Shown: positions 9,901 to 58,970 of the stretch, one piece after another | How the letters are laid out: the number at the start of each line of letters is the position of its first letter | Numbering within the stretch: the first letter of the stretch is position 1 | Assembly (NCBI RefSeq): GCF_964204645.1 | Contig: NC_134030.1 | Location: 1,161,355-1,225,354 of the forward strand | DNA: 64,000 nucleotides | Direction: 5' to 3' | From: Tubulanus polymorphus | Lineage: Eukaryota > Animalia > Nemertea | Translations under genes and position numbers: made by a program | The notes under the pieces: model-generated | Database searches by the model: none | The model's input: only the letters and a program-made list of their open reading frames with translations | What the model was told of the DNA's origin: nothing

Positions 9901-12900
9901 CAGCTCAAGGTTCAGCCCGAACTCACACAATGCCATCTCAAGCATCCGTACTTTCTCAAGCGGCTACTAATGCTGTTTGGAGAACAAGTGCACAGCTCCA
10001 ACATTCTCGTGCCCCTTCTGGTCAGAATAATTCTAGTTCATATCGGGGAATGCTCCTAAAAGGAGCTCTTCCTCTCGGAGAAACTCAAAATGAATGCTCG
10101 GGGCCAGTGAGAGGTTGTCTATAACGAGCAGCCACCTACTGATCCGGCGTTCCCGGGTCGTATCACGGCGGCTACTGTCTTCAATTCTGAACACCTCCCG
10201 ACATGCGCCCGAAAGCAGGTCACGAGACACTAATCTCGTTAGCTCTCAAAGATCTGGCCAAAAAGAGAGCAATAGAACCAGTACGGGACGAAGCCACATC
10301 CGGCTGGTTTTCATGAATATTTATGCTCCTGAAGACCACAGGGCGTCGATGGACTGTCATTCCTCGAGTGGCACCTGGATATCCCGAGGCTTCCGATGAC
10401 TAAAACAGGGAGGTAATTCAAGGTCTCCGTCGAGGTTAATGGGCGGCTTCATTGGACCTGAAAGATGTCAGGTTCCTATTCACCCGAAATCTCATCAATT
10501 GCACAGAATGAAGTGGAAACGCTGCCAGTTCCAGTTCAGGTCTCTTCCAGTCGGCCTCAGTACAGCCCACGCCCTGGGTATTTACCAGCTTGGGTCAAGT
10601 CCAGAAGGTACACTACACTCCAGGGCTGGGTTTCATAGATATGGAAGAAAAATAATTCCAGGGAACATTTTGAAATTTGTCAGTTATAACCATGGTTTCT
10701 CATTGTTAGTATGGTGGTTGAGGATTTATCCCTTTGGATAACTTTGATACTCAGTCTATGAAACCGGGTCCTGGAGTATTTGTCTGTTGGTTTACCTCGA
10801 CGACTGGTTACTAGTACCAAACTCGACTATAGAATGTCAGGAGGCGGTGACCGCTGTCGACCGCTGTCGTAGACTTAGTTCACCAGTTCCGCGTAAACTA
10901 AGTAAAATCTCACTTGATGCCGTCCCAACAGTTCACATCTCCGGATCAGCACGGTCTTTCCGTCCATGGCTCGAGTAGCCAAACTTCAAGAAGCGTAGTT
11001 ACCACAAACGAGAGGACAGCTAGTTATCGGTGACGCCTGTGGCTAAATGCAATACCGCACTGCCAGGGGTCGTATCTCTGGCTATCTACACATTCAGAGA
11101 ATATTAACTAAAACCATAGGAAAGGGTCAAGCACTACTCCGAAAAAAACTAATTTTATTTCCAAAAAATTATGATATTATATGGATTGCATGCTGTGTGG
11201 AAGAAGTTTTCAAAATTATTTAGGAGCTTATTATAATTTGAATGCATGAATTGAGAGCAATTTGAAATGTGTTGATATCCGAAAGTGTTTCCATTGACTT
11301 CACTCATTCACCTGATGAAGCTTCTATACATTAGTACCCAAAGCTTGTGTGTCAAATAAACTAGTTACACGTCCTATAAAGTATTACTTGTCTCGTTATA
11401 TATTCTAAACCCCAGTTAACAATTCCAGTAAGTCAGGTTTAGGGAATAGATATTTAAACCTTGAGATGATACCGATGTGATACAATTCCAGTAACTCAGG
11501 TTTAGGGAATAGATATTTAAACCTTGAGATGATACCGATGTGATACAATTCCAGTAAGTCAGGTTTAGGGAATAGATATTTAAACCTTGAGATGAAACCG
11601 ATGTGATACAATCCCAGTAAGTCAGGTTTAGGGAATAGATATTTAAACCTTGAGATGATACCGATGTTATACAATTCCAGTAAGTCAGGTTTAGGGAATA
11701 GATATTTAAACCTTGAGATGAAACCGATGTGATACAATTCCAGTAAGTCAGGTTTAGGGAATAGATATTTAAACCTTCAGATGATACCGATGTGATACAA
11801 TTCCAGTAAGTCAGGTTTAGGGAATAGATATTTAAACCTTGAGATGATACCGATGTAATACAATTCCAGTAAGTCAGGTTTAGGGAATAGATATTTAAAC
11901 CTTCAGATGATACCGATGTTATACAATTCCAGTAAGTCAGGTTTAGGGAATAGATATTTAAACCTTGAGATTAAACCGATGTAATACAATTCCAGTAAGT
12001 CAGGTTTAGGGAATAGATATTTAAACCTTGAGATGAAACCGATGTGATACAATCCCAGTAAGTCAGGTTTAGGGAATAGATATTTAAACCTTGAGATGAA
12101 ACCGATGTGATACAATTCCAGTAAGTCAGGTTTAGGGAATAGATATTTAAACCTTCAGATGATACCGATGTGATACAATTCCAGTAAGTCAGGTTTAGGG
12201 AATAGATATTTAAACCTTCAGATGATACCGATGTGATACAATTCCAGTTAGTCAGGTTTAGGGAATAGATATTTAAACCTTCAGATGAAACCGATGTGAT
12301 ACAATTCCAGTAAGTCAGGTTTAGGGAATAGATATTTAAACCTTCAGATGAAACCGATGTAATACAATTCCAGTAAGTCAGGTTTAGGGAATAGATATTT
12401 AAACCTTGAGATGAAACCGATGTGATACAATTCCAGTAAGTCAGGTTTAGGGAATAGATATTTAAACCTTCAGATGATACCGATGTAATACAATTCCGGT
12501 AAGTCAGGTTTGATATTTAAACCTTGAGATGATACCGATGAATTTAGCAATTTTGAATGAATTAAACCAATATGAGATTTCGATCCTAAGAATATTGGAA
12601 GCTTGTGTTTAACGTTACTAAATATTAATATTATATAAAGCTAGAAGGACACGAGCGTATCCATTTTTCGCCCGATCGCGACGATTAAATTCGCCGGTGA
12701 ATTTATACGCCCGATACGAGCGGGTACCGATCTATCTATAAATCGGCCGTCACGGTGATTTCGTCGCCCGCCGACATTAAACATGTTCGATATTTACGCC
12801 GGTGTTCGGGTCACTTGTTAATTCGCTCGGCTTGTCGGCAAGCTTAAAAAGATTTAGAAAAAACTAGAAATTCTCATTCCTGAATGAACTGGATTCATCT

Positions 12901-15900
12901 GGGTTCAGTTTCATGAGACACAGTTCAAACTGCTCTTGAATTTGAGTTTGTAATTAATGTATGTGATTATAATGAATTGTATTTTTGTTTTACAGCTTTG
13001 GCATTTCGGTTAAGTCGTGCGTTCCGGCGGGAGGAGTTCGTCAGAATATTTCTACCGGAGTGTAAGTAGTTTAACTATTTTCATACAATATCATTTAGTG
13101 TGACGTGTGTTACTGATTCAGGCACGGATCCAGGAATGTTTCCAAGACGGGGTTCATAAAAATGCTGACTAAAATCTCTAATAATAGCCGGGGCCTATAC
13201 GGCATATTTTTTGGCCAAACATAAGGCCTTTTTTTAATAGCATGGTTTGGTTGCTCCCAAAATTTGAAGAAACATAAAATAAAAAAGAATTAGAAAAAAA
13301 ATTTTTTATTCCTGTCTGTGAAACAAATTCAGTGAAAAACCGAGCAAAAAAGATTTTTCACCTCGGCCGAATGAGAATCCTGGATTGAACGATGAAACAA
13401 TTGAAAAACGCGAGGTTCTTTTTTGATCGCAGTGTGCAGAATTCAAACTTTCCAAGAATCATTTGTTCGGACATATGTATATTGCCCTATTGACAGTTCC
13501 CTCTTCCTTCTAAAAGTGATTTTATCTCACTGAGGGAATTTTTAAAAAATTTTCTCTGAAATGATATGGTAGCGTTTTTTTTTTTGCTTTAAAAATTTTT
13601 TGGTAGCCGATCAGCGGGGTCACGACCCCTGAAACCCTCCCTGGATCCGCGCCTATGATATCTCCTCAAAATCTAATAAAATCTTTCAATGAATTAATGC
13701 TGTAATGACGATATGTAGCCATCTGTCTATTTGAATGCATTTGCAAAAAGACAAAAAGAAATAGTAGCAGAATTTTGGCTAAAAGTTTAGAATACCCAAA
13801 TTCAACATTGCTTGCAGCAGACGGAATTTCCGCCATTTTGGTTAACAGGGGATTCCCCCCTCCGGTACTTCCCATGATCAATAGTGTCTATGACGCGTTG
13901 CGTACGGAATGCCATGGAATTCCCTCACATGATTTATGATAATAATGTTTACTTGCATTCTGATTGGTTAAAATCGCGTGTAGTTTGAACGTAGGCAATG
14001 TTTACATTTGTAACGTCACCGGCGAGTCGCTGACATTAACGTAGTCATTGAGTTAACATTATCTTGCACTGAATGGTGATATCAATCGCATTCATTTTAT
14101 AAATATTTTGAATATGAATTTGTTTTTATATATCAACTGCGAGTAACAGTGTTACGCTATTGAGTCTTAAGAGACAGCCTTTATGGACCTTATTGGTTGT
14201 TATAACTCACAAGCTGACTGAGTTAGCATTCTGGATCCGTCAGATTAGTTACTTCTAGAAAATATGTTAGTCACATTTTCTGACTATATTCTGGAAAACA
14301 GTGGAAGCTTGTATCCACCCTAGATTAGAACCAATCAGAATAGAACCAATCAGAATACACTATTTTACAGAAAATATATTTATGACAATTGCGTAAGGTT
14401 TTAGTAAAATAGTGTTTTTTCTCGAGTAGTTGCCGAAGAAGCATAAAAATTTGATTCAATTTCATTCAGATTTAAACAAACAAATCGAATTTCATTTCAT
14501 TCAGCGCAAACTTCAAATCTAATTAAAATTTTGTTCAGTATGAATAAGTTGCAAATCATTGAGAGGAAAAAATAATTAATTGTGTTACTTAAAAAAATCA
14601 CAATTGTACTGTGTTTATCAAAACAGGAGACCACAGGACCTTTGGTCCTCTAGTATTCTTTTCCTAGTTATTCCAAAAACACTAAAACAGTCCAATCAAT
14701 GATCGCTGCCAGACCAACACGATTACATTGAAATCAAACTTAAGTAACATCAGGCGCCCCCTGTTGGAATAATATTCATAGCCGTAGCATCGAAACCATT
14801 CGACTTGTTGTTTAATGTATTTCTCTCTATTTTTATTTTACAGTGATGAACATTTTAGAAGAATGTCCGTTTGGGGACTTGGTGGGGGAATTCAAAAGAA
14901 ACTTGGTTCCCGATAGGATACCACCACCGGTTAATCCTATATCGCCCGCTGCTGCCCCTCCCCCACGTCCATTAAATTCGCCTCAGCAGCGGCCTGTCAG
15001 ACAGCCGCCCCCGGCCGCCACTCGTTCGTCAGACAGAGTCCGGGGACGGCTGTTTGAAGGAGATCTGACGGAGGTAAGAATCTTTATTTGTATTCATATT
15101 TTATTCAGGATATCAGTTGAAGTTCAGCAAATAAATTACCAGACCTGTAAACAGAAGAGTAGTCATAAATTTCCATTTGCGGGTAAAACCCCATAGTCGA
15201 AAACCTTCGGTTATTGATCTATATCTGCTTAAGACCAATGGTTGTACACACGAGTGCGAAAACTTATCGCTCAAACTTTGATTGTATCCATGGTAACGCG
15301 TACAGTATACTATGCGTGACTTACCGTTTCCTATCACTGGAATACAATACTGTTTTTGACCATGAGCGCCATCTGCGGCGGTCATAACGGACTGACTGGT
15401 GATTGGCTGAAATGCTCGTCTACCGTGGTGACGATTATTCGGTGTTACACGTGCAGCAGACACGTCTCTGAATATCTAACATTTGATTGTTGTAACTCAT
15501 CGGGAAAAATATGTTTATGAGTCGATTTTTTGTCGAAATTTTGTTCGGCAGAAAATTGGCTGCGTACGTCAAGAAGGCGGCTGATATTTGTATCGTGTGA
15601 CCCCTCGTCCCGGTAATATGCCGACCCACGTACACCTGAGACCAGTTGCATAGTCAGAGCTTAGAATTAAGACCGTTCTAAGACCAACTTAGTTCTATAG
15701 CCAATCTAATAACTTAAGACCAGTCTTTAGATTTAAGACCACTTTTGGACTTAAGTCTTGACCATGGAATCGGCCCCAGATGCTTATTCCGCTGTATTGG
15801 ATGCTGACGTGCTCGTGTCTTCCAGCAATGTTGTTATTCACCAAAAATATCATGTTTTGTTCGAATAACACGATTCATCTGAGTCTGGGTTTAACGGATG

Positions 15901-16600
15901 ACACGTTCAAACAGAACTACGAAATCAATATCAGAAGTCCTTTTATATTGAAACGGTCCCAGAAGTCCCTGTTATAATGGGTACTTTTTCAAAAAAAGTA
16001 ACGAGAACTCCGATGGCTTTCCGTATCGGTAAAAACTAACTATTTCTATGAGCGTCACTCGTAGATTTACCGAAACGCCACCTTGTGACACGATATCCTA
16101 ACTACGTATAGGTGTTTTATTTGCTGAATCGCTGGTTTCTCATTCTCATTTTTTATACTTGTGTTTAATTTTATACTAAACAAATTTTTCACTTTTTCTC
16201 TTTACAGACACGACCACCGCCAAAAAAAACTAGAACAAAAAGGAAAAGAAAAGTTGCGGTCGTCGTGGCTCCGCAGGGAGGAGGAGCAAGAGTGGTCCCG
16301 GCGGATGGTGCGGCTGAAGAAGGTAATCGGGAGGAAGGGGAGGGGATAAATAGGAAGCGGCCGAGGAGGGATGGTGGTGGGGCTGGGGATGGTGCGGGTC
16401 CTGCTCCTCCTGCTCCTCCATCCGTATCTCGGGCGGTCACTCGTTCACTCGCCAAAAAGCTGGCGAGTGAACGAGTGGCCCGAGAGGTAGAGGTGGTGGC
16501 CCGACATACGGATGGAATGTGGGAGGAGCGGCTTCGTTCGGGGACAATTCCGGATTTGTTAACTGATTTAAAAAATATTCTTTCAGTGAAGGGATATTAG
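915..16600 (+). CDS. Gene A copy 1: spliced orphan gene, 9 coding exons, 340 aa, low-complexity probable nuclear protein
   Basis: Exons 915-977, 2142-2231, 2641-2679, 3056-3082, 4975-5013, 5224-5299, 12996-13061, 14844-15073 and 16208-16600. All have pyrimidine-tract+AG acceptors and GTAAGT/GTAAGA donors, with compatible phases (0,0,0,0,0,1,1,0). Total 1023 nt with no internal stop: MPKANKKTRGVGPSTSSPYNK-GTAQ17KFNISMSGID-FLPTTPPSGVSTP-DLSPIQHVD-RQFASQARSPSLN-LSNNS7APLPPETPPDLQAR-TLAFRLSRAFRREEFVRIFLPE-LMNILEECPF...RGRLFEGDLTE-TRPPPKKTRTKRKRKV...RLRSGTIPDLLTDLKNILSVKGY*. The frame is preserved in copy 2. Confidence 0.8.
1043..1149. mobile_element. Small MITE, PIF/Harbinger-like (also 33065-33171)
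   Basis: TIR ggtccagtttcacaaa / tttgtgaaactgggcc with CTG direct repeat on both sides. Confidence 0.7.
1729..1873. mobile_element. Tc1/mariner(pogo)-type MITE
   Basis: TA|cagcagactc ... gagtctactg|TA: TIR with TA target duplication; inserted into the second copy of a ~300-bp intronic duplication. Confidence 0.65.
3907..4219. mobile_element. MITE with 14-bp perfect TIR
   Basis: atgggatacccgca ... tgcgggtatcccat plus further internal inverted matches; also present in copy 2 (~35932-36244). Confidence 0.7.
4606..4824. mobile_element. MITE (CAGG...CCTG ends)
   Basis: caggtccgtagc ... gctacgttcctg imperfect TIR. Confidence 0.55.
6974..8178. mobile_element. Non-autonomous DNA transposon, CAGGGTTC termini, 5-bp TSD (hAT5-like)
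   Basis: ctgaa|cagggttc ... gaaccctg|ctgaa, with subterminal cttgaaa repeats. Copy 2 (39396-40547) has a ~50-bp deletion near its right end. Confidence 0.8.
7435..7894. mobile_element. Harbinger-like MITE nested in the hAT5-like element
   Basis: Imperfect ~30-bp TIR ggccatacaaaaatcaaggtctgtttgccgt / acggcaaaacagacaattaatttgggatggcc; TTA on the left flank. Confidence 0.65.
8590..8786 (+). repeat. 35-bp tandem repeat (~5.5 units; also ~40959-41155)
   Basis: Unit gtcgagggaccgtttaggaagttcacgtctttcac. Confidence 0.95.
8848..9617 (+). mobile_element. Helitron/Helentron-type non-autonomous element (HINE-like) with ~161-bp internal tandem repeats
   Basis: 5' short inverted pair agctacc...ggtaagc; ~3 internal units each containing aagatggccgcc; 3' hairpin ttgac-tcactg-gtcaa followed by CTAGTT. 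Confidence 0.55.
10250..10940 (+). pseudogene. DIRS-like reverse transcriptase remnant
   Basis: Frameshifted motifs KRAIEPV...GWFS*IFMLLK, WAASLDLKD, VPIHP...QFRSLPVGLSTA and VYLDDWLL match the DIRS RT pattern (KGAIE.V / SLDLKDAY.HVPIH / LPFGL.TAP / YLDDWL). About 190 bp of unrelated sequence is inserted before YLDD. Confidence 0.85.
11305..11400 (+). mobile_element. Penelope-like pseudo-LTR fragment with degenerate minimal hammerhead core (also ~43673-43770)
   Basis: cac-CTGATGA-agcttc...ccCAAAGCTTgtg...AATAAA; the GAAA core reads CAAA, so it is probably inactive. Confidence 0.45.
11420..12540 (+). repeat. 63-bp tandem repeat (~18 units)
   Basis: Unit caattccagtaagtcaggtttagggaatagatatttaaaccttgagatgataccgatgtgata. 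Confidence 0.96.
13120..13654. mobile_element. MITE present only in copy 1 (intron 7)
   Basis: TIR aggcacggatccagg / cctggatccgcgcct; absent from the corresponding site (~44740) in copy 2. Confidence 0.75.
15639..15776. mobile_element. Harbinger-like MITE (CWG flanks)
   Basis: ctg|agaccagttgcatagtca ... tgaccatggaatcggccc|cag, with internal ttaagacc repeats. Confidence 0.5.
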
Positions 16601-23710: not shown

Positions 23711-24406
23711 TTTAATGAATTGGTAGAAATTCTATTTTTAGGTGACAGGTCAAATAGATTAGAACAGTAATTTATGCAGAGGTTGAATTAATTTAATGTT
23801 TGATATACCAAAGAATGGTTTATTGTGAAGATTTAATTAAAATCTTAAATAAAGAGTTGTTCAATTTCATAAATGTTTTGTTTTCGATGAAGTTTTTTCA
23901 TTTTCTGGATTTGAGGAATTATACTTTAAACACATCGGTGGATTCAGCACAGTTCTGTGGACACAGTTTTGGGACCGAGACACAGCTCAAGACCCAGTTA
24001 CAAGTTCAACTGGACTCCATCCCAAAAAACCCTGGGCCCTTCAAACCTTTAAGTAAGATGCTCACTTACAGATTCATAAAATTGACCCTTATTATCTTGT
24101 CATCTGCAGCACCATCTCAGAGGCTTAAACCAAGAATTTCTTGTAATGTTCAACAAATGTGAATTACATTAAGTAATTTTTGAGATCGACTTATTACCAC
24201 CAGTATTGAGTTTTTTCTAAATCACAGTCTACTTATTTTATATTCATCCACGATTTCATAGCTCTTTAACTATTCAACCCTTTCCCTGATGGGCCCTGGC
24301 CCCAATTGCTGAACCCAGTTCTCCAAGTCTAACTTCTGGGTTTAATGGTTTATCAGAGAATTAATGGATTAATTGGAAATAATCTAACAATCAATAAAGT
24401 TGTTCT

Positions 24407-24472
24407 TTTTTGATACGGGCTAGAAGTTGAGGGGCCCGCGCCCCGGGTTTTCTTTAAAGCTTTTGGCATTAT
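24407..24472 (-). pseudogene. Third variant of gene A exon 1, truncated at the duplication breakpoint
   Basis: Reverse complement reads ctag|ataATG... MPKALKKTRGAGPSTSSPYQK; the upstream 70 bp match copies 1/2 except for a 1-nt indel; no GT donor. Confidence 0.85.
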
Positions 24473-24542
24473 CTAGAAAAACAAGTAAAAATTATTAAAT
24501 CATTTGAAAATATATCAGTCAGTCTTATTCTGGTTCAGTGAA

Positions 24543-25105
24543 CTAATTCTCTATATGGTGCATTTAGGGGTCCAGGGACACCACATCCACTAATTCTCTA
24601 TATGGTGCATGTAGGGGTCCAGGAACACCACATCCACTAATTCTCTATACGATGCATGTAGGGGTCCAGGGACACCACATCCACTAATTCTCTATATGGT
24701 GCATGTAGGGGTCCAGGGACACCACATCCACTAATTCTCTATACGATGCATGTAGGGGTCCAGGGACACCACATCCACTAATTCTCTATATGGTGCATGT
24801 AGGGGTCCAGGGACACCACATCCACTAATTCTCTATATGGTGCATGTAGGGGTCCAGGGACACCACATCCACTAATTCTCTATATGGTGCATGTAGGGGT
24901 CCAGGAACACCACATCCACTAATTCTCTATATGGTGCATGTAGGGGTCCAGGGACACCACATCCACTAATTCTCTATATGGTGCATGTAGGGGTCCAGGG
25001 ACACCACATCCACTAATTCTCTATATGGTGCATGTAGGGGTCCAGGGACACCACATCCACTAATTCTCTATATGGTGCATGTAGGGGTCCAGGGACACCA
25101 CATCC
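24543..25105 (-). repeat. 47-bp satellite, inverted orientation (~12 units)
   Basis: Reverse complement of the unit at 1-842 and 31581-32864. Confidence 0.97.
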
Positions 25106-25548
25106 TCTATTCTGTTTGGGGCATGGAGATTGCCCAGATTGCCTCTGCTAACAACAGACACCCATTCAACATTTCTCTTTATGGTACTTTCTTCTTCCTC
25201 TTTTCTCTCATTTTACAAATTGATATTCAACTATGACCTTTTTCATTTTGATATGATGTTTATCTTTACATCATGGTTGCTGGAGATTGTACAAGGAATG
25301 ACACAAGAAATAATATCCTTAGTTTTAAACTCACAGCTGTTTGCAATTCTTTCATTTAATCACAGGTTCGATTGAAACGATGCATTCCTATACATATACG
25401 CAATCATATCTTTTTTCGAGTCATCATTCTCAGGGAAATTTGATCTCCACTCAGGTACAGTCTACTGGCTTGCCAGTTATCCTTTAACTTTTTTACAAAA
25501 TTATCTTTTCAAAATGAATTACCATGAAAGCAGTAAATTTGAACTTAC

Positions 25549-25826
25549 CTTATCATAAGGGGTTTTTCTTTTACTCTTTGTTTTAGCTTTAGCTATCTTT
25601 GATTTGCTGGTGGTTTTAACATGCATGTCGAGGGAGCTCTATCAATCAAGGAACAGTCGGCTCACAAGCAGCCCCTGCCCAAAAGGTTTTGACATTATAT
25701 TTTCAAAAGCTCTAGTTGTTCTGTAGAACCGAGAGCGGAGCTCTGACTTGTTCCCCTCACTGCTGAGGTCTACTTTCTCTGATTCGCTGATTGGCTTCTC
25801 TTTGGTACATTTTAGATGATCAAAAA
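25549..25826 (-). pseudogene. Divergent exon-1-related exon ending ...MHVKTTSKSKIAKAKTKSKRKTPYDK|GTAAGT
   Basis: PYDK followed by gtaagttcaaatttactgctttcatg is homologous to gene A PYNK|gtaagtacaaatttactgcttccatg. The frame extends to an AG at 25827 with two adjacent stops (TGA TAG) shortly before the ATG at 25626. Confidence 0.6.
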
Positions 25827-25899
25827 CTAGAAACTGTCATGCGTTTATTCATTTGGGTATATGTTAAAATTCTTTTACAGTAATGGCATATTAGGCACA

Positions 25900-26246
25900 T
25901 CAAAACAAATCCGGAATTGTCCCCGAACGAAGTGGCTCCCTCCACTCTCCATCAGTATGCCGGGCCACCACCTCTACCTCTCGGGCAACTCGATCACTCG
26001 CCAGCTTTTTGGCGAGTGAACGAGTGACCGCCCGAGATACGGATGGAGGAGCAGGAGGAGCAGGACCCGCACCATCTCCAGCCCCACCACCATCCCTCTT
26101 CGGCCTCTTCCTATTTATCCCCTCCCCTTCCTCCCGATTACCTTCGTCAGCCGCACCATCCGCCGGGACCACTCTTGCTCCTCCTCCCTGCAGAGCCACG
26201 ACGACCGCAACTGGTACTTTTCGGTTTCTCATGGTTTCCCCACCAT
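25900..26246 (-). pseudogene. Third variant of gene A terminal exon with a different 5' end
   Basis: ORF 25900-26253 shares VAVVVA...RHTDG...LRSGTIPDL with exon 9, with a different N-terminal part and an earlier stop; candidate acceptor ttctcttttgaaag. Confidence 0.85.
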
Positions 26247-29200
26247 CTTTCAAAAGAGAACTATCAATATATCATTAGCTACAAGGAAATTTTTCAGAAA
26301 CTTTTTCAGGTCATTCTTTCTTGTATTATTAGCATTTGATTCTCTATATATCGTCAGAACATGGACTCAGAGTGTTTCTTTAATGGTTAAGAATGTCTCT
26401 TTAACCAACATCCCCCTAGCCTGCTTCCTACATATCCCTTCCCTTTCCTCCTGATTACCTTTGATCCCCACTGCCTAGCAGCTAACAGCTGCTGCTATTT
26501 TATCTGGTTTACATGTTTTGCAGATAGTGTCTGTTATGCTATAGTTGTTCTTTTAATCGTTTAACTTCTTCATCTGAAATTTCATTATTCTAATTTCAGT
26601 TTCACGCAGGAAATGGTTCATGAAAATCTGCATTGAGACTGGGACGAAATGTGCATTGAGACGGATGAAATCTGCATGAACAGAGATATACTTTAAGATC
26701 CCCATTTTATCCATCGGAGTGAATGTACATCCACTACTCACAGGTAGCAAACCTACAAACGCTAAACACTCATCCCTGGGCCCTGATTCAAAAATAAAAA
26801 TAAAAGATTAAATTAAGAATTAACATTTTTATGAATCAGTGATCAGTTTCATAAAATAATTCCTAAATTAATTTTAGGGGTTTATTATTTCATATTGAAA
26901 TGAATTCTTCATGTTTATGCAATTCTCATTATCTTTCATTGCAGCATTTATATATTCAATTTTAATCATACATGTGAAATATATAATGTATTTTCAGGGA
27001 AACGTAAACAAGAAAGGAAGGGAAGAAAGAGAAGGGAAGAAAGAGAAGGGAAGAAAGAGTTGGATGATTAATGCGCACTTATTCTCCATTCCGAATTCCT
27101 GTACTCGACTCTAGGTGATCATCATACGAACGAGATATAGAAAAAAAAAACATTACTGAAGTCATCTCTATTTTGAAGTCTCAATTAGTATTCAGTTTAC
27201 TTCAGATAACGTAATTTGGTTTAATCACAAGTCGTCAACATTATAATCAATGTAACTACAGTGACTACATTATTGTCCTTTTATTGAGAAATTTATGTTA
27301 AATTTTGATTTCTGGGATAAATCAAAATTCAAATGTTATCATTTTTTGTATCAAAAATTGTAAAAAATTGAATAACTTGTGTGCTATTGAAACATTCAGT
27401 TATGGGGAGTTTTTTGCTCAGAAAACTTTGAGCCTGTTTATACAAGTGTTGTAACAAGTGTTGAACAATTCAAAGATCATGTTTTTTATACTTTGCCATG
27501 TTAGAAAAAATGTTTTCTAATATATTGATGTTTCTAAAAAAACATATGATTCAACTTCAAACGGCCAACAAGCCTTCTAATAAAACTAGTTTGTCATATA
27601 TATATATATATATTACTTGGTCATTGTCAAGTTTTTTTAAAAATATTTTGGTTTTCTCAGCTTTCTCTGGTGGAAATTTCTTCGTGGAATTCCTCTTCTA
27701 TACAAGTTCCTCCTCAGACTGTTTTAATGCGAGAGTTTTTAACAACCGGATCCTCAGAAAATGGTCGGAGTGCCAAGTCTTCGATTTAAGATCACCAGTC
27801 TTATCTGAGACCATAAGTTCACTAGCGAATCCAACAGCTATAGGATGGAACAGTATTATTATATAGGTCACCACTGTGCAATTGAGCCCAGATCATCAGA
27901 AAAAGATAAAAGTGAAGATATGTGATGGGATTCATTGAAAATTTTGCATATATAATTAATTCATTGAAATACTTAATTTGTATGACTTATTTTTTGGGAA
28001 TTTTCGAATTTGTCATCAATAACTAGTATATATTTCTTTTCAAGTTGTGAGCGATCTAGTTCTCTGTCGACCCATTGAAAATGAATCGACTCTGAACTGT
28101 AGAACTGGACCCAGGGAGCTGAATCTCGCGTGCCACAGCAAGATACAGAGCTCTTCAATGTCTTAACCGTCAGGTGCTGCCCCTAAACAAATCAATAGCG
28201 GTAAATCTGTGAACTAACTTATAGCTCGCTTGCCAGAGTAGAATCATAGCGAGCTGTCTAAAATCTTGAACCGTCTAGTGCTGCCCCTTAATCGATATGT
28301 ATCGGAAAAGTGAATTTATTACTCGCATGCCACAGTAGTTGAGTAGTTGGAACATCACGATAGACTCGTTTTTCTGTGCAGCTATAACGGGAACTATTTC
28401 AGATCTGATAATGAATATAAACTCAGTCACAGTTCGATAACAAACGCCGCTGGGTGAAATTGATGTAAACAAATAATCGTGTTGAAATTGAATTTAGTTT
28501 AAGATATATTTTCGTGGTAGTTTTTATTTTCAAGCTGTTTACGTTCACTTCAAATGATGAAACGATGAAACCATATTAAATACATCCCTGTTTTAGTGGG
28601 GATTTTGAGTTTTGGTCCTTTCCGTATCTTCTAGAAACATCAAGTAGAAAGGCATTAACTGAACCCTATGTCTTTAACTTCAGGAGTCTATATGGAGTTT
28701 TCGGATGCCTCTTTTCCTCACTTCTTGCATTCGTCACTATTAGAAATCCGGACAAACTGAATTCAGTTCGACGAGGCCGAAGAACAGAAGACCAAAGAGT
28801 GATCTGCACTAGCCGCAGGGTTCGTGTTGGCTTGGATCGGTGGGAGGCAATCAAACCCCGACACGTGAAGATGTATCCTCAAAAATGGATACCGGAACGC
28901 TTCTCTGGTTTACGATGATTAGTCTGCAGGGATAACTCTTTGGCGGGGCGTGATCGCGTGAATAGCCCAAACTAAACCTTCAGAGTTCACTGTACTACAG
29001 CATACAACATCTGATAACTTGCATAATAAAGCGCGGCGTGCATGAAAAGAATTGTATAAATGCGGGCAAGATTCCGTGCCCTGGCAATCGAACGCCGGAG
29101 TGGAGGTATTCCATACACTGGTAGGTGAGTCGGAGTAGACTGGTTGCTTGTCCCATAGAGACCGGTAACCAGTCTAGCCACCTCACGATCAGTCTACATT

Positions 29201-29639
29201 GAAAAACCATTACTGAAATATGGTTGACGGAAATATTCATTTTATATCAGATTCTAAAATATTTTCTCGTATTGAATACAAAATTTTTATTATCTTAATA
29301 AGATAAATCTGCCAAAGCTCAACAATTTAAATTAGTGAAAACCGATGTGCGAAGTCGTCAATTCAGTAGCCCGATAGAGCCCGGTAACCAGTCTAACTGA
29401 CAATGTTCATTGCGCGGGAATGAACGGGCAACTAGTCTACGATGAAAAATCATTTCTGAAAAATTATGAACGGAGATATTCAGTTTACTTTGAATTTTGA
29501 ATTATCTTATAAAACTGACAGCCATATTAACCAAAGTATTAATAGTAAATCTGATAAAATCTAATACCGGTTTTAGAATAGGTGAAAACTGATTTATGTG
29601 ATGCCGTCGGTTCAGAAGACTGATCCGTAGAATCGTTCG

Positions 29640-29803
29640 CCACTTTCTTCCGGTCCACTTACTTCCGCGTTTGTGATTTGCATACAAGTAGTTTGAATGT
29701 TAAATGTATTAAGCCGCGTGTTGATTGGTTGAGGTCAGTGCGGTTTACTGAACGATGACCAGCTGTCAGCTGATCGAATCATTCGTTTCACAGACATTAC
29801 GAC
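29640..29803 (+). promoter_or_regulatory. Candidate promoter and short non-coding first exon for gene A copy 2
   Basis: ETS-like cttccgg, octamer atttgcat, CHR-like tttgaa, inverted CCAAT, Inr-like tcattc (~29780), then a donor ac|gtaagt at 29804. Exon 1 of gene A is preceded by an acceptor AG and therefore needs an upstream exon. Confidence 0.4.
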
Positions 29804-30424
29804 GTAAGTATATTTTACATCTTTGATCAAAAATTGTAGTGTAAAAAAACTCAAAACTAAGGCCTCTATAAATGATCGATTGACTTTAAATTATTACTTT
29901 AGCACAGCTCTTGTAGACAATGATTAGGTGTCATAGTAGTTTAGCTCGAAAGTGCACATATAAGGTTAATTTTCATCCCTTATTTAGAGACCGAGGTATT
30001 GAGCGTCCATTTCAGCCCTTAAAACATCATCAACCTACCTCAAACTGACTGTTTTTAAATCCAACAATAGCTACCTAACTATTGACTCATCATGGATTCG
30101 ATTCAAAAACAATTTTTGATGATCATAGTGATTCGAAACGTTTGAATTTTTGAAAAACACGAATGCTAAACGACGGATCCGGACTTCGATTGCGGCCCAA
30201 TGGCAGAGTTGATTTTCTTATTTGGAATTTGAAGATATAAATCACTGAAATCAATTGGTTTTCTCAACCAAAATTAAAATTAAGAAGAATTTAGGATGGA
30301 GATGTTTGATTTTCATTTTGTCTAAAATGCCGACTTAAAAATTAATTCAATTGAATCAAATTAATGAATTCATCATTTCACGATATTATAGATAATCAAA
30401 ATGTGAATATGAAATCACCTTTTC

Positions 30425-31530
30425 AATCGCTGTTTTTGGGTAAGATCGCAGTTTTTAGGTAAGATCGCAGTTTTTAGGTTAGATCGCTGTTTTGAGGTTA
30501 GATCACCGTTTTGTGTTAGATTGCGGTTTTGTGTTAGATCACTTTTTTGTGTTAGATCGCTGTTTTGTTTTAGATCGCTGTTTTAGGTTAGATCGCAGTT
30601 TTTAGGTTACATTGCAGTATTTGGGTTAGACCGCAGTTTTTTGTTAGATCGCAGTTTTTAAGTTAGATCGCTGTTTTGGGTTAGATCACAGTTTTTGTGT
30701 TAGATCGCTGTTTTAGGTTAGATCGCAGTTTTTGTGTTAGATTGCATTTTTGTGTTAGATCACTGGCTTTTTGTTAGATCGCAGTTTTTAGGTTAGATGG
30801 CAGTTTTTAAGTTAGATGGCTGTTTTGTATTAGATCGCTGTTTTTAGGTTAGATTGCTGTTTTTAGGTTAGATTGCTGTTTTGTGTTAGATCGCTGTTTT
30901 TAGGTTAGATCACAGTTTTTGTGTTAGATCACAGCTTTTAGGTTAGATTGCTGTTTTTAGGTTAGATGGCTGTTTTTAGGTTAGATCCCTTTTTTTCTTA
31001 GATCGCAGTATTTAGGTTAGATCGCTTTTTTTGGATTAGATCGCAGTTTTTGGGTTAGATCGCAGTTATTGGGTTAGATCGCAGTTATTGTGTTAGATCG
31101 CTGTTTTTGGGTTAGATCGCTGTTTTTGGGTTAGACGGCAGTGTTTAGGTTAGATTGCAGTTTTTAGGTTAGAACAATGTTTTTCTGTTAGATCGCAGTT
31201 TTTTTGTTAGATCGCAGTTTTTAGGTTAGATCGCAATTTTTTGTGTAAGATCGCAGTTTTTTGTTAGGTCGCTGTTTTTGGGTTAGAAAGCTGTTTTTGT
31301 GTTAGATTGGTGTTTTTAGGTTAGATCGCTATTTTTGTGTTAGATCGCTGTTTTTGGGTTAGATGGCTGTTTTTGGGTTAGATGGCTGTTTTTGGGTTTG
31401 ATCGCTGTTTTTGGGTTAGATCGCTGTTTTTGGGTTAGATCGCTGTTTTTAGGTTAGATCGCTGTTTTTGGGTTAGATCGCTCTTTTTGGGTTAGATCGC
31501 TCTTTTTGGGTTAGATCACTGTTTTTGTGT
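30425..31530 (+). repeat. 19-20-bp G/T-skewed minisatellite (~55 units)
   Basis: Unit ~ggttagatcgctgttttt(a/g). Confidence 0.95.
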
Positions 31531-31580: not shown

Positions 31581-32864
31581 CATATAGAGAATTAGTGGAT
31601 GTGGTGTCCCTGGACCCCTACATGCACCATATAGAGAATTAGTGGATGTGGTGTCCCTGGACCCCTACATGCACCATATAGAGAATTAGTGGATGTGGTG
31701 TCCCTGGACCCCTACATGCACCATATAGAGAATTAGTGGATGTGGTGTCCCTGGACCCCTACATGCACCATATAGAGAATTAGTGGATGTGGTGTCCCTG
31801 GACCCCTACATGCACCATATAGAGAATTAGTGGATGTGGTGTCCCTGGACCCCTACATGCACCATATAGAGAATTAGTGGATGTGGTGTCCCTGGACCCC
31901 TACATGTACCATATAGAGAATTAGTGGATGTGGTGTCCCTGGACCCCTACATGCACCATATAGAGAATTAGTGGATGTGGTGTCCCTGGACCCCTACATG
32001 CACCATATAGAGAATTAGTGGATGTGGTGTCCCTGGACCCCTACATGCATCATATAGAGAATTAGTGGATGTGGTGTCCCTGGACCCCTACATGCATCAT
32101 ATAGAGAATTAGTGGATGTGGTGTCCCTGGACCCCTACATGCATCATATAGAGAATTAGTGGATGTGGTGTCCCTGGACCCCTACATGCATCATATAGAG
32201 AATTAGTGGATGTGGTGTCCCTGGACCCCTACATGCACCATATAGAGAATTAGTGGATGTGGTGTCCCTGGACCCCTACATGCATCATATAGAGAATTAG
32301 TGGATGTGGTGTCCCTGGACCCCTACATGCACCATATAGAGAATTAGTGGATGTGGTGTCCCTGGACCCCTACATGCACCATATAGAGAATTAGTGGATG
32401 TGGTGTCCCTGGACCCCTACATGCACCATATAGAGAATTAGTGGATGTGGTGTCCCTGGACCCCTACATGCACCATATAGAGAATTAGTGGATGTGGTGT
32501 CCCTGGACCCCTACATGCACCATATAGAGAATTAGTGGATGTGGTGTCCCTGGACCCCTACATGTACCATATAGAGAATTAGTGGATGTGGTGTCCCTGG
32601 ACCCCTACATGCACCATATAGAGAATTAGTGGATGTGGTGTCCCTGGACCCCTACATGCACCATATAGAGAATAAGTGGATGTGGTGTCCCTGGACCCCT
32701 ACATGCACCATATAGAGAATTAGTGGATGTGGTGTCCCTGGACCCTTACATGCACCATATAAAGAATTAGTGGATGTGGTGTCCCTGGACCCCTACATGC
32801 ACCATATAGAGAATTAGTGGATGTGGTGTCCCTGGACCCCTACATGCACCATATAAAGAATTAG
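31581..32864 (+). repeat. 47-bp satellite (~27 units)
   Basis: Same unit as 1-842. Confidence 0.97.
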
Positions 32865-32936
32865 TTCACTGAACCAGAATAAGACTGACTGATATATTTT
32901 CAAATGATTTAATATTTTTACTTGTTTTTCTAGAAG

Positions 32937-35900
32937 ATGCCAAAAGCAACAAAAAAAACACGGGGCGTGGGCCCCTCACATTCAAGCCCGTATAATAAAG
33001 TAAGTACAAATTTACTGCTTCCATGCTTATTTATTCATCCCATACTTAGTATTTTGTACCCCTGGGTCCAGTTTCACAAAAAGGATTAACGCCTAAATCG
33101 ATTTAAGATAAACTGAATTAATGAAGAAATTAAATCGATTTAAGAGTTAAACCTGTTTGTGAAACTAGGCCCTGAATTGCATCTAGAATGAAAAAAAAGA
33201 AAAAAAAATATTGAAAATAACGTTGGTGAAATATTTCTGGATCTTTCTGGATTTCTGCTCAATGCATCGTTTAGTAAAATATCGATATTCTCTAAAAGTA
33301 AAGATATAAGAATAAAAATATTGTATTGAATCGTGATTAGTTACTGTATGCGCTGCTAGTTGTTGCCCAACCCATAGCCTCATTTCTCTCCATTCTAAAT
33401 TTGCATTGTTTAACATTGTCTGGTCGCTATGGAAACTATTTATTTAAGTTTCTTTGTGGTATCCATGGCAACAGTAACGTTTAGGTAGTGGCACCAATTA
33501 TGGGTCCCAACGTTCCCATGGCGATACATGAGAACATTTATCCTATTTTTGACCTTCATGACGTAAGATGGTAGTGAGTCGATGACGTCATTTTCGTCTC
33601 ACCACTAATGAAAAAAAAAATGAAATGAAAAAAAAGGAAAAAATCGTTAGAATTACGTTTATGAAATTTTTCTGGATCGGCTAAATGTATTGTTCCATTA
33701 AATATCGACATTCTCTAAAATTATAGGCATCAATATCAAAATGATGATACAGCAGACTCCGCTTAACTCTGTTCTATTTGGACCATTAATTAACCGAATA
33801 CCAACTTTTTAAAATTTTAGGATTTTAACTTCAAGGATCAGAAAATGTGTATGCAATATCAACCGGGTACCGAGTAGGGTGGCCGAGTCTACTGTAGTCT
33901 GCTGCCCCCTCGAATCCATTACCTTATTATCTCTCAATTTGCATTGTTTGACCTCATCTGGTTGCTATGGAAACTATTTAGTTATATCAGGAACGGTTTT
34001 TTCGAGGTAACCAGTGGCAACAGTTAACAGACGTGTCCATCCTAGAGATAAACTGTCTGATTTCACAGCCACATCCGTCCTGGAGATAAACTGTTAGATA
34101 AACTCTGATTTCGCGTCTGTCCTATTTCTTGTCATTGTATGAATATGTTTTCTCTTTTATAGGGTACAGCGCAGCAACAACAACAACAACAACAACAACA
34201 ACAGCAACAGCAACAACAACAACAAAGATTTAATATTTCTATGTCAGGAATAGACGTAAGTTATCGTAAACGCCTGTTTGAAGTCATCATTCTTGAGCTT
34301 GAAACCGAAATTTATATTATAGAATATTAAACCCTGCTTCTGCTACTGACAGGTAATGTCCGTCATACATTACTGCATCGTCAAATCTATACCAGGGTGC
34401 ACCCAGGCAGATCGTTCGCATCATCACATGCAAAGGGCTGATTATTTTGGAACCCAGTTTTTATCAGCTGGAACATTCTGCACATTCGACCATATTGATT
34501 GATAGCCCGTTATAGACGAGTGGAGAAAAACTGAAAAACCAGTTCGGAAAAACTTCGATTGATTTCACTCACATTTACAGAAATTTGGTCCGACCCCAAA
34601 ACCATTCACTTACACTATACAAATCAGATCAGGTTTTTAACATTGTCTTTGATTGTATTTTCAGTTTTTACCCACAACGCCGCCCAGTGGTGTTTCGACG
34701 CCGGTAAGTGATAACTATTTTCTAATAAATCACGCTTATTTCAATTTGTAATTTGAAAATAGAGGGTAGTAGCTGTTATGTATAAATTATGCTAATTAGG
34801 AATAAATTCAAATTCGATTAAGTCTCATCATCGTAGAAGTCATATATTAATGATGCTATCTCTAAAGTTGTCATTTAAATTAAGTGTTATATTTACTACT
34901 TCATTTGCTTCATGACCCAAAAACCTCTACTATATAACTACTGGTTTTGTTCTAATCTTGGAGAATTTGCTGCAAAATTTACTTATCATTTGTTAAACAG
35001 TTTTTATTGAAAACCTGAATCAGTGATACATGCATTCATGAATATCCATCTAATATTTTGTTTTATTTTATCTTTACAGGATTTATCACCGATACAGCAC
35101 GTGGACGTAAGAGATTAAACATTGATCTTGAATTTTAAGTTCAAACTAATTTATTTTTTATCTCACTCGGGACTATAGTTATTGCGTTCACTTTGCGTCC
35201 AGTTGTCTCGGGTAGTTTTTGATTTATCGTGTTGATAATTGGTTTATATACTCAAACTCAAAATATCGGCGCAATTGGAATTAAGATGGCGCACTTGTAT
35301 GTCCATTTTTTTCCCTGGCAAAATTAGCACTTTAGCAGATTTTAAGGATCAATTCTGTTGTTATATTACATTGAAATCAGAGTTTAATATATATCGGTAT
35401 AGAGCAGATTTTTGCTCTAGTTATAAATAAAGTTATAAATAATCTCATGACATGTTCTGTATATGTGTAGTGAGTTTCAATGTCTTTGGTTCCTTTTAAA
35501 CCAGGGGGGAGTTAAATTTGAAAATGTCAGATCGTCGAGCATTTCAGACCGCATCCAAAGTGGGTCCCTGCACCCCTAGTTATACCGTTAATATTTTAAT
35601 AATACATTAATATTTTTATTTGATAGAATATATTGATATACCATACATTGATATCGGTCTTGTAATTGGATCAACAACCATGAGATCAAAACACAGCAAA
35701 TATGAACCTGCTGTGAATCAATAGATTTGTGATAAATGTAATGAAATTGTTATTTTTCATATTGACTTTTTGAGTTAAGGGTCTGTTGTATAAGAGTCTT
35801 TGGTCTCGCGTGTCAATGTATGATATCAATCTGTTGTATTTCCTCGTTCCAATGTTTAAAAGGTGTTCGTCACCTTATATTAATAAACTACTTTAACCGT

Positions 35901-41900: not shown

Positions 41901-44900
41901 GTGGTTTATTTATGGTGGTCAGAGGATGAGACCTATTACAATTTGCATTCTCTACTTGACTCACTGGTCAAGGGTTAATATCTAGTTTGATAAATGTGGA
42001 GCATGTCGGTGAATCACCCCCCCCCCCTCCCCCGGACTCTGATCTCAATGTCTGATGTCAATCGTCAGCAGTTTCAATGGAATGGGCTCGATTAGGTGTG
42101 GAACAAGTGGAATCCTCGATTGCCACAGTCGAACCTAGAGTATTAAGAGCTCAATTAGGTTCTTCTTTGCGTCTCTTCTCCGGTTGGAGTGCTCCAGTTT
42201 CCACCGAATGGAGGAAGATTCGAGATGTGCAGATTCAAGTCCACCATGCGGACTCCAGCTCCGGCTCCGGCAGCTCAAGGTTCAGCCCGAACTCACACAA
42301 TGCCATCTCAAGCATCCGTACTTTCTCAAGCGGCTACTAATGCTGTTTGGAGAACAAGTGCACAGCTCCAACATTCTCGTGCCCCTTCTGGTCAGAATAA
42401 TTCTAGTTCATATCGGGGAATGCTCCTAAAAGGAGCTCTTCCTCTCGGAGAAACTCAAAATGAATGCTCGGGGCCAGTGAGAGGTTGTCTATAACGAGCA
42501 GCCACCTACTGATCCGGCGTTCCCGGGTCGTATCACGGCGGCTACTGTCTTCAATTCTGAACACCTCCCGACATGCGCCCGAAAGCAGGTCACGAGACAC
42601 TAATCTCGTCAGCTCTCAAAGATCTGGCCAAAAAGAGAGCAATAGAACCAGTACGGGACGAAGCCACATCCGGCTGGTTTTCATGAATATTTATGCTCCT
42701 GAAAACCACAGGGCGTCGATGGACTGTCATTCCTCGAGCGGCACCTGGATATCCCGAGGCTTCCGATGACTAAAACAGGGAGGTAATTCAAGGTCTCCGC
42801 CGAGGTTAATGGGCGGCTTCATTGGACCTGAAAGATGTCAGGTTCCTATTCACCCGAAATCTCATCAATTTCACAGAATGAAGTGGAAACGCCGCCAGTT
42901 CCAGTTCAGGTCTCTTCCAGTCGGCCTCAGTACAGCCCACGCCCTGGGTATTTACCAGCTTGGGTCAAGTCCAGAAGGTACACTACACTCCAGGGCTGGG
43001 TTTCATAGATATGGAAGAAAAATAATTCCAGGGAACATTTTGAAATTTGTCAGTTATAACCATGGTTTCTCATTGTTAGTATGGTGGTTGAGGATTTATC
43101 CCTTTGGATAACTTTGATACTCAGTCTATGAAACCGGGTCCTGGAGTATTTGTCTGTTGGTTTACCTCGACGACTGGTTACTAGTACCAAACTCGACTAT
43201 AGAATGTCAGGAGGCGGTGACCACTGTCGACCGCTGTCGTAGACTTAGTTCACCAGTTCCGCGTAAACTAAGTAAAATCTCACTTGATGCCGTCCCAACA
43301 GTTCACATCTGATCAGCACGGTCTTTCCGTCCATGGCTCGAGTAGCCAAACTTCAAGAAGCGTAGTTACCACAAACGAGAGGACAGCTAGTTATCGGTGA
43401 CGCCTGTGGCTAAATGCAATACCGCACTGCCAGGGGTCGTATCTCTGGCTATCTACACATTCAGAGAATATTAACTAAAACCATAGGAAAGGGTCAAGCA
43501 CTACTCCGAAAAAAAACTAATTTTATTTCCAAAAAATTATGATATTATATGGATTGCATGCTGTGTGGAAGAAGTTTTCAAAATTATTTAGGAGCTTATT
43601 ATAATTTGAATACATGAATTGAGAGCAATTTGAAATGTGTTGATATCCGAAAGTGTCTCCATTGACTTCACTCATTCACCTGATGAAGCTTCTATACATT
43701 AGTACCCAAAGCTTGTGTGTCAAATAAACTAGTTACACGTCCTATAAAGTACTACTTGTCTCGTTATATATTCTAAACCCCAGTTAACAATTCCAGTAAG
43801 TCAGGTTTAGGGAATAGATATTTAAACCTTCAGATGAAACCGATGTGATACAATTCCAGTAAGTCAGGTTTAGGGAATAGATATTTAAACCTTCAGATGA
43901 TACCGATGTGATACAATTCCAGTAAGTCAGGTTTAGGGAATAGATATTTAAACCTTGAGATGAAACCGATGTCATACAATTCCAGTAAGTCAGGTTTAGG
44001 GGATAGTTATTTAAACATTCAGATGAAACCGATGTAATACAATTCCAGTAAGTCAGGTTTAGGGAATAGATATTTAAACCTTCAGATGATACCGATGTCA
44101 TACAATTCCAGTAAGTCAGGTTTAGGGAATAGATATTTAAACCTTCAGATGATACCGATGAATTTAGCAATTTTGAATGAATTAAACCAATATGAGATTT
44201 CGATCCTAAGAATATTGGAAGCTTGTGTTTAACGTTACTAAATAGTAATATTATATAAAGCTAGAAGGACACGAGCGTATCCATTTTTTTGCCCGATCGC
44301 AACGATTAAATTCGCTGGTGAATTTATACGCCCGATACGAGTGGGTACCGATCTATTTATAAATCGGCCATCACGGTGATTTCGTCGCCCGCCGACATTA
44401 AACATGTTCGATATTTACGCCGGTGTTCAGGTCACTTGTTAATTCGCTCGTCTTGTCGGCAAGCTTAAAAAGATTTAGAAAAAACTACAAATTCTCATTC
44501 CTGAATGAACTGGATTCATCTGGGTTCAGTTTCATGAGACCCAGTTCAAACTGCTCTAGAATTTGAGTTTGTAATTAATGTATGTGATTATAATGAATTG
44601 TAATTTTTGTTTTACAGCTTTGGCATTTCGGTTAAGTCGTGCGTTCCGGCGGGAGGAGTTTGTACGTTTGTTTCTCCCGGAGTGTAAGTAGTTTAACTAT
44701 TTTCATACAATATCATTTAGTGTGACGTATGTCACTGATAATCAAAATCTAATAATAACTGTTGATCCGTAGTATTAACATTGTGCAATTGAAATCCTAT
44801 AGTTGTTTTTAGAAAGGATAAATGGCGCCATCAATGTGACAATCGATTGTAAAGTTTAAGAAATGAATGTTTAACCTCGCCGAGTACCAGAATTCTTAAC

Positions 44901-55528: not shown

Positions 55529-55689
55529 CTATTCAAGCAATGTAGGAGCATTTATAGGCGCAGCAGGAAGGAGGAGTTCAGGAGCAGCATCATATAGGAG
55601 TTGCACAGGAGCAGCATCATATGAGTAGTGCAGGAGCAGTGAGAGCTTCATAGGAGCAGCAAGACCAGCATCATAGATAGGAACAGTAG
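55529..55689 (-). CDS. Possible terminal coding exon with YDAAP repeats
   Basis: Strong acceptor ttgtttcatttcttcag followed by TVPIYDAGLAAP...YDAAPVQLLYDAAPELLLPAAPINAPTLLE*; no linked exons identified. Confidence 0.25.
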
Positions 55690-55781
55690 CTGAAGAAATG
55701 AAACAAGATAAGTAGCATTTGAAATATAGAAAATAGAAAAGCTGTAGAATGTTTTCTATTGTAAAAATATATTTTCAAATT

Positions 55782-58700: not shown

Positions 58701-58970
58701 TTTTCCATTCCATCCCCAAGCGCCATACTACTCATTCCCTCTATGATTGAATAAGATAGAAATGTTACAATGTTGTAGTTAGACGGATGGGATTGATTTT
58801 CTTTGCTAATGAAGATGAGAGAACAAACATTCTTCTAACTGAGGAGGAATAAGTGAACAAACTACAGCGGTGTTACACATTCAATGTTACATGTACATCA
58901 GTCACATCTCAATTAGACTGAAACAATGAGTGAAACTTCTACAGTTACAATCTGACACAAATCAGACTGT
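55782..58970. repeat. Diverged inverted duplication: arms ~55782-56340 and ~58400-58970
   Basis: For example cagtctgatttgtgccagattgtaactgtagaagtttcactcattgtttcagtctaat matches the reverse complement at ~58912-58968. The inner part encodes an S/T/P-rich ORF (55996-56325, minus strand) that is disrupted in the right arm. Confidence 0.85.
57222..57495. repeat. Three diverged ~85-105-bp hairpin-containing units separated by A-rich tracts
   Basis: gagtgggg...cactgtctgcc-tagcg-ggtaggcagtg-gtctattcctacctcgactc-A(n). Confidence 0.7.

Follow-up and report, generated by a model that had tools for sequence, protein, structure and literature searches.

A 64-kb stretch of the 268-Mb Tubulanus polymorphus genome (G000:C6:1161355-1225354, hereafter the window) carries two tandem copies of a gene that we call gene A, at 1-24401 and 32023-54481, which are 95–99% identical in self-comparison. 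Between them, at 24402-26253, lies a cassette of inverted gene A pieces, which a preliminary description of the window had put forward as a candidate antisense or hairpin suppressor of the gene. Sequence-level work covered a continuous 250 kb in which the window is included (C6:1040001-1290000), part of arrays that span ~2 Mb, at 0.64–1.77 Mb on C6 and 0.40–1.34 Mb on C3, and all comparisons of sense gene A copies concern the six copies inside that region; results from beyond it are coordinates returned by searches of the window's own genome. Positions given without a contig refer to the window.

Gene A and the anatomy of the cassette

Gene A was re-derived from splice motifs and open frames as nine plus-strand exons of 1023 nt and 340 codons, with consistent phases. 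In copy 1, exon 1 (915-977, 21 codons) is followed by exon 2 (2142-2231), which encodes polyglutamine, and by exons 3 (2641-2679), 4 (3056-3082), 5 (4975-5013), 6 (5224-5299), 7 (12996-13061) and 8 (14844-15073), while exon 9 (16208-16600) provides the last 130 codons and the stop. Upstream, ~70 nt between an array of a 47-bp satellite and the ATG form a putative leader. The exons were treated singly, the joined coding sequence being neither built nor searched, and exon 9, searched alone, had no match in Pfam or the ESM Atlas. The introns have features of their own. Intron 1 contains a palindromic element of ~110 nt with terminal inverted repeats, resembling a miniature inverted-repeat transposable element (MITE), at 1041-1151 and 33063-33173; its sub-threshold Rfam matches to microRNA precursors (MIR5070, mir-556) most likely reflect the element's own hairpin. 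In intron 6, overlapping open reading frames (ORFs) at 9819-10741 on the plus strand include a reverse-transcriptase-like motif (…LPVGLSTA…), and are probably a retroelement fragment that contributed to the growth of this 7.7-kb intron. Intron 7 differs by an indel between the adjacent units, occupying ~1.65 kb in copy 1 (13118-14773) and ~150 bp in copy 2 (44740-44891).

On its minus strand the cassette presents an exon 9 copy, an exon-1-like stub, the 47-bp satellite and an exon 1 variant, in the order originally reported, and coordinates and alignments agree that these pieces are inverted, out of gene order and unable to encode gene A. The exon 1 variant, casA (24407-24469, minus strand), has its ATG and 21 codons, with 18/21 residues as in gene A (tblastn E 3.6e-10); its GTAAGT donor is destroyed in the alignment. 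This piece had been described as a third exon 1 variant, and as such it is present, but the cassette is not alone in having it: over the first 29 coding bases, a sense exon 1 at C6:1252002 matches it exactly. Next to casA lie an inverted copy of the leader (24470-24541, minus strand), near-identical to the sense leaders, and 12.2 copies of the 47-bp satellite (24542-25113; Tandem Repeats Finder, TRF), which are inverted with respect to the arrays at 1-843 and 31581-32865. An unclassified dispersed repeat of ~230 bp, overlooked in the preliminary description, occupies 25135-25353; it has at least 29 copies at 74–80% identity on nine contigs (C1, C2, C3, C6, C8, C9, C10 and C11 among them) and probably derives from a transposable element. 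An Rfam search of the cassette, with this repeat included, gave no match.

The exon-1-like stub (25549-25626, minus strand) holds a 26-codon frame that runs from an ATG to ...TPYDK and is followed by an intact GTAAGT donor. Past the donor, ~35 nt of intron-1-like sequence continue down to 25513 (25513-25564 versus inverted 965-1013, 83%, E 1e-7). Nucleotide and protein alignments to exon 9 identify the remaining piece, casD (25865-26238, minus strand), as a pseudo-exon: 25865-26227 corresponds to inverted 16238-16599 at ~90% identity (E ~1e-116), and at the protein level 26238 to 25906 is 88% identical over 111 amino acids. Exon 1 is the source, and the putative target, of casA and the stub, and exon 9 the source and putative target of casD. 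Just beyond the reported interval, a 58-nt exon-9-like scrap (26404-26461, minus strand) is 83% identical to 16378-16320. It lies in segment E (26254-30425), a spacer segment confined to gene A arrays that follows the cassette in every unit, whether of the short or the long spacer form. Further on, the 47-bp satellite, leader and exon 1 of the next gene A copy (31581-32999, plus strand) provide the partner arm of an inverted repeat with 24488-25109. As had been claimed, the orientation of the pieces means that a plus-strand transcript over the cassette would be antisense to exon 9, exon 1 and the leader.

The left edge of the cassette, 24401/24402, had been called a breakpoint. Homology between the tandem copies does stop there, the tail end being common to both (24300-24401 corresponds to 54380-54481, with 100% identity between 24320-24401 and 54400-54481), but the last ~43 nt of the unit tail (24359-24401, minus strand) weakly resemble the start of inverted intron 1, within a high-scoring segment pair of 24359-24545 versus 1025-840 at 82%. 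Because this inverted similarity extends past the edge to 24359, the position is better read as the point at which the short and long forms of the spacer diverge.

Repeat units, spacer forms and decay

Within the window the cassette seems to be a singular feature between the tandem copies, an impression that landmark probes and a genome census dispel by placing it in other units as well; it arises because the second gene A copy of the window belongs to a long-spacer unit. The repeat unit measures ~33 kb, has ~28 copies in the genome, and is ordered as 47-bp satellite, gene A, a 7.8-kb tail, spacer, segment E and a 19-bp satellite. In the short form, the landmark probes recover across the 250 kb the order tail, casA, satellite, casB, casC, casD and E, then the 19-bp satellite, every 32–34 kb, with cassette copies after gene A at C6:1086288, 1119258, 1153596, 1185756 (the window copy) and 1279362. 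Once all 33 candidates had been scored, 28 tail ends were counted genome-wide. Twelve of these 28 junctions (11 units, all on C6) enter the cassette; the remaining 16, of which C6 has 7 and C3 has 9, enter a long spacer. The inner cassette that bears casB has 11 copies genome-wide (7 on C6, 4 in C3 spacers), and casD is carried by at least 15 short-type cassette copies, with more in the long spacers. Between C3 and C6, identity is 92–97% for the cassette, 96–97% for segment E and 93–95% for the tail end.

Two further units lie apart from these arrays. At G000:C8:15597891-15621862, a gene A unit outside both arrays and in the opposite orientation includes segment E, whose 91-bp sub-repeat is present in a long run; homology stops inside E (~window 26789), and no cassette match adjoins it. 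This unit may represent the state before amplification, or an array edge. A lone inverted long-spacer unit occurs on the minus strand at G000:C6:642215-674555, ~370 kb upstream of the main C6 array.

All gene-A-derived pieces of the two long spacers examined are on the minus strand. The long spacer contains tandem 2.7-kb inverted mini-genes, which are not scrambled but follow gene order (satellite, exon 1, exon 2, exon 3, exon 3, exon 4, exon 8), then exon 1 modules and two inverted copies of exon 9, D1 and D2. The mini-gene pieces keep 50–400 nt of intron flank. Because they are colinear and retain these flanks, the mini-gene fragments are genomic duplicates, and not copies of complementary DNA (cDNA) or a purpose-built exon-only array; a retrocopy origin of the cassette, considered separately, was ruled out on the retention of intron flanks by its fragments. 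One junction in the mini-genes is intronless: on the minus strand at C6:1047228-1047533, with repeats at 1044551-1044853 and 1041128-1041415, a second exon 1 copy (82%-diverged) directly abuts exon 2, intron 1 being absent. This junction is as long as the spliced one and agrees with it at 12/21 bases, intron 2 has been retained at 96% identity, and the copy at C6:1047228-1047533 has a 1-nt frameshift; an ancestral intron-free state or a partly processed copy could account for it. The first 9.5 kb of the long spacer in the window (54482-64000) have no gene A similarity and no ORF above 124 amino acids, and contain an inverted repeat (55756-56341 versus 58993-58408, 83%) and a 53-bp tandem repeat (59242-59490).

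The cassette pieces are truncated and without the expression signals of the parent gene. In casD, the acceptor has gone with an 8-9-bp deletion, and the stop and the 13 codons before it with a 63-bp deletion at the 3′ end; the casA donor is lost as well, and the exon order is broken. Substitutions look neutral and indels differ between copies. Across five short cassettes, the ratio of nonsynonymous to synonymous differences per site (pN/pS) between casD and exon 9 is 0.69–0.88, and the older D1-type exon 9 copies give 0.40–0.48, with pS ~0.2. A frameshift deletion of 8 bp affects 3/5 short cassettes as well as the D2 copies, deletions of 3 bp and 9 bp are seen in other copies, and the longest open stretch of casD drops from 123 to 82–88 amino acids in the frameshifted cassettes. 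These comparisons also dispose of a small protein gene on the minus strand, suggested by an ORF of 117 amino acids at 25900-26253: 3/5 sister cassettes are frameshifted, pN/pS is near 1 and there is no Pfam match. Because the 8-bp and other deletions disrupt the sister cassettes, the ORF is an accident of the window copy.

Diagnostic sites in the window casD are of D2 type in the 5′ part of exon 9 and of D1 type in the 3′ part, including the 63-bp deletion. The single casD of the short form thus looks like a recombinant of D1 and D2, and because other short cassettes switch between the two types at a different point, at least two recombinations between D1 and D2, or a later conversion, appear to have taken place.

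With moderate confidence, we read the cassette as a co-amplified and decaying relic of inverted gene A copies that recombination has reshaped and that would now be drifting neutrally. Inverted copies of gene A would have joined the ~33-kb unit before the unit was amplified; the spacer now has two forms, the long form with mini-genes, D1 and D2, and the short form with the cassette, whose exon 9 copy would derive from recombination between D1 and D2. Copying of whole units, together with homogenization by unequal crossing-over and gene conversion, would keep cassettes 96–100% alike between units and would account for the persistence of the cassette without recourse to selection on it. Set beside the observed anatomy, copy census, neutral-like decay, chimeric structure and the allele sharing described below, this order of events and the absence of a function are what we infer. 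Inverted, truncated pseudogene fragments are known at the junctions of segmental and tandem duplications, where complex rearrangements arise by template switching. The cassette is similar, with inverted, truncated and out-of-order pieces between direct repeats, neutral decay and variants derivable by recombination. Unlike such fragments, the gene A pieces have been amplified further (~30 exon 1 modules), cover all exons and are still exchanging with intact genes.

Sequence variation and exchange with the sense genes

Variable sites were counted among the six sense copies and compared with a background of 2.7%. Excess differences are confined to exons 1–3, reaching 27% in exon 1 (p = 1e-12), 18% in exon 3 (p = 9e-5) and 7.8% in exon 2 (p = 0.012). 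Exons 4–9, the leader (4.2%, p = 0.45, not significant) and the 3′ flank (2.0%, p = 0.82, not significant) are at background; exon 9, with 1.5% variable sites (6 of 393; p = 0.2, not significant), has not responded to casD. The excess in exons 1–3 is mostly synonymous and at third codon positions, and the copies do not differ over the 40 nt of intron to either side. CpG decay was considered as a source of the exon variability and ruled out: in our reading, many of the differences are transversions outside CpG. At the 5′ end, the last satellite unit before the leader (831-837 and equivalents) reads TATAAAG in 4/6 sense copies, and TATAGAG in 2/6 and in the cassette. The association of TATAGAG with exon 1 alleles of the casA kind suggests that the 5′ end falls into two haplotype classes. 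As a core-promoter difference between genes and inverted copies, TATAAAG versus TATAGAG proved uninformative, since both forms occur in both classes.

Several exon alleles are common to sense and inverted copies. The sense exon 1 at C6:1252002 that begins with the 29 coding bases of casA has as its 3′ remainder another sense allele. Two sense genes and the antisense mini-gene at C6:1049003 have the same exon 3 allele, marked by four synonymous changes, and all copies agree over 40 nt of intron to either side of this exon; variants of exon 2 are likewise common to the sense and antisense sets. Among the tandem mini-gene units, one carries an exon 8 that is 99% sense-like, compared with ~85% in its sisters. 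Because alleles are held in common in this way, the sense genes and the inverted fragments would make up one exchanging pool, and exchange between the two is the sole activity that the sequences document. The sharing fits a suppressor that tracks its target and plain conversion between inverted repeats equally well; in our view, conversion between the inverted fragments and the sense genes follows from the layout and is not a function. Neither process explains the near-saturated third positions of exons 1–3 beside identical introns.

A further proposal, which we consider improbable, is that the inverted pieces, casA included, constitute a reservoir of old exon alleles, acting as donors and recipients of conversion and thereby generating exon-limited, mostly synonymous mosaics. 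Even then, the reservoir would be an architectural consequence and not a selected function, and would be compatible with the cassette being a relic. Donor sequences of this kind could produce the mosaic exon 1, the exon 3 allele and exon 2 variants held in common with the mini-genes, and the sense-like exon 8. The uniformity of exon 9 would also be expected under conversion combined with purifying selection, because casD variants are mostly non-synonymous or indels and would be purged once copied into the gene. However, the proposal leaves unexplained how exons and flanks came to have differing histories in the donors, with identical flanks beside third positions near saturation. Repeated duplication could also have given rise to the shared alleles, which are drawn from six sense copies in 250 kb. 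Silent donor cassettes for gene conversion are known from the chicken pseudo-V segments and the vls locus of Borrelia, where conversion is programmed, somatic or clonal, and diversifies a protein. In common with these systems, gene A has inexpressible partial copies, often inverted, beside expressed ones, and the expressed copies carry mosaic alleles. In contrast, the differences at gene A are mainly synonymous, and arise in the germline over evolutionary time, with no machinery or selective benefit in evidence.

Candidate suppressor roles of the antisense spacers

Several observations weigh against reading the cassette as a relic. Throughout the 250 kb, all gene-A-derived spacer pieces are antisense to gene A; in each of the six copies, exon 9 is matched by 107–131 perfect antisense 24-mers from the cassette; and an inverted repeat of 622 nt, 98% identical, joins 24488-25109 with the 5′ end of the next gene. 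Taken together, the two long spacers contain pieces of all nine exons, while the long intron interiors are absent, and the ~30 copies of the exon 1 module are of many ages in the allele table. The casB segment is 97–99% identical between C3 and C6, above its surroundings. A plain relic model does not explain the synonymous excess in exons 1–3, and sources of small RNAs need no coding constraint, such that neutral decay does not exclude a role. Two of these observations have other explanations. Uniform antisense orientation can follow from one inversion and local duplication, and need not reflect many independent events. The long intron interiors of gene A are rich in satellites, the palindromic MITE-like element and the reverse-transcriptase-like fragment; because the missing interiors are those filled by satellites and elements, descent from an older, compact gene would explain the exon-centred appearance of the spacers as well as selection.

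Rather than being a relic, the cassette may belong to a suppressor of the PIWI-interacting RNA (piRNA) type that is interleaved in cis with its targets, an alternative we regard as possible, though doubtful. Plus-strand spacer RNA, antisense to exon 9, exon 1 and the leader, would be processed by PIWI proteins into piRNAs that restrain the amplified gene A; the transcript would come from gene A read-through, from the dispersed repeat or from an unmapped start, as with Su(Ste) except that the suppressor would sit within each unit. The consistent antisense orientation of the spacer fragments is in keeping with such a role, as are the 90–94% identity of casD to exon 9 with its long perfect matches to every sense copy, the near-perfect antisense copy of the leader, and the presence of a repeat resembling a transposable element inside the cassette. 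Coding capacity has been lost through frameshifts and deletions, as in the Su(Ste) repeats, and sharing of alleles between sense and antisense copies, including the 99% sense-like exon 8, is what a target-tracking suppressor would be expected to show. The genome also contains at least six loci with Piwi domains, and piwi genes have been reported from another nemertean (PMC7764242).

The pattern of variation is less favourable to piRNA-type suppression. The best-matched parts of the mRNA (exon 9, the leader and the 3′ flank) are without escape substitutions, and only exons 1–3 are hypervariable. The preliminary description had linked the cassette to synonymous recoding of gene A in an arms race, and this link appears to fit poorly because exon 9, the best-complemented part, and then the leader are among the least variable. 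For exon 1, casA provides perfect 21-mers to only 2/6 alleles, nine to the one at C6:1252002 and one to that at C6:1060627. Uniform orientation is obtainable from a single inversion with local duplication, as noted above, and the cassette copies decay differently from each other. No promoter for the cassette was identified, in a scan that used a bacterial-type promoter/terminator model and is not applicable to an animal genome.

The closest parallel to such a suppressor is the Stellate/Su(Ste) system of Drosophila melanogaster, in which Su(Ste) consists of frameshifted tandem homologues and antisense transcription from a hoppel insert yields piRNAs (PMC7874207). Both systems combine an amplified gene with amplified, frameshifted repeats that are ~90% identical to it; both have inside the repeat a transposon-derived piece, a probable one in the cassette; and the output proposed for the cassette is likewise antisense RNA for the piRNA pathway. 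Su(Ste), however, lies on another chromosome than its target, is a near full-length homologue, and has demonstrated antisense transcription from hoppel, whereas the cassette is made of short pieces (exon 9 and two exon 1 stubs), is physically inverted, and is found in cis in each unit.

The hairpin form of the proposal is the weakest version of the suppressor idea, and we consider it highly improbable. As a hairpin RNA (hpRNA) locus producing endogenous small interfering RNAs (endo-siRNAs), a single transcript spanning window positions 24.4-33 kb would fold 24488-25109 onto 32298-32919 and be cut by Dicer into siRNAs against gene A. These arms are 98% complementary over 622 nt and the same layout occurs in other short-form units, but they are 6.5–7.2 kb apart and consist almost entirely of satellite and leader. 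The 98% identity gives out ~18 nt short of the ATG, and ~11/63 positions differ between the exon 1 sequences. There is no internal inverted repeat within 24402-26253, the nearest partner arm being the one 6.5–7.2 kb downstream, and casD is without a nearby sense partner, the nearest exon 9 lying 9.3 kb upstream. Amplified clusters that interleave paralogues with hairpins do have a precedent in D. simulans, for example in the hp-tHMG cluster (PMC10317233). The cassette resembles this cluster and the Dox/MDox genes with their hpRNAs Nmy and Tmy (PMC10317233, PMC10292708) in that young amplified genes are interleaved with their own inverted fragments, and in the rapid turnover of copy number and structure. 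The Drosophila loci differ in being compact local inverted repeats within one defined transcript, which Dcr-2 cuts into siRNAs, in contrast to the cassette with its distant and mostly satellite partner arm. A further point against a hairpin is a published survey in which Dicer-2 was not found in nemerteans and the small RNAs of Notospermus geniculatus had no endo-siRNA signature (PMC11114477).

In its fullest form, the suppressor proposal holds that each 33-kb unit of gene A, a putative orphan gene, bears an antisense module of its own, which with the inverted mini-gene arrays of the long spacers would make up a single-strand piRNA source interleaved with its targets; conversion would keep suppressor and target matched, and the synonymous change in exons 1–3 would mark escape. 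We think this combination unlikely. If it were true, a spiralian would offer the first self-contained target/suppressor array beyond Drosophila and mouse; should small RNAs arise from the locus, it would be a rare instance, outside the model species, of an amplified gene family held in check by its own antisense copies. Variants specific to the cassette provide unique mapping tags, namely the casA allele, the stub and, in casD, the 63-bp deletion junction and the 5′ end of D2 type at about 26200-26238. If the cassette is a relic only, as we favour, it would clearly illustrate how inverted pseudo-exons enter a tandem amplicon, travel with it and are reshaped by recombination, and would be a caution that antisense orientation alone is no proof of function. 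Because exon alleles are common to both, accounts of the exon-limited synonymous differences in gene A must treat the sense and inverted sets as a single pool.

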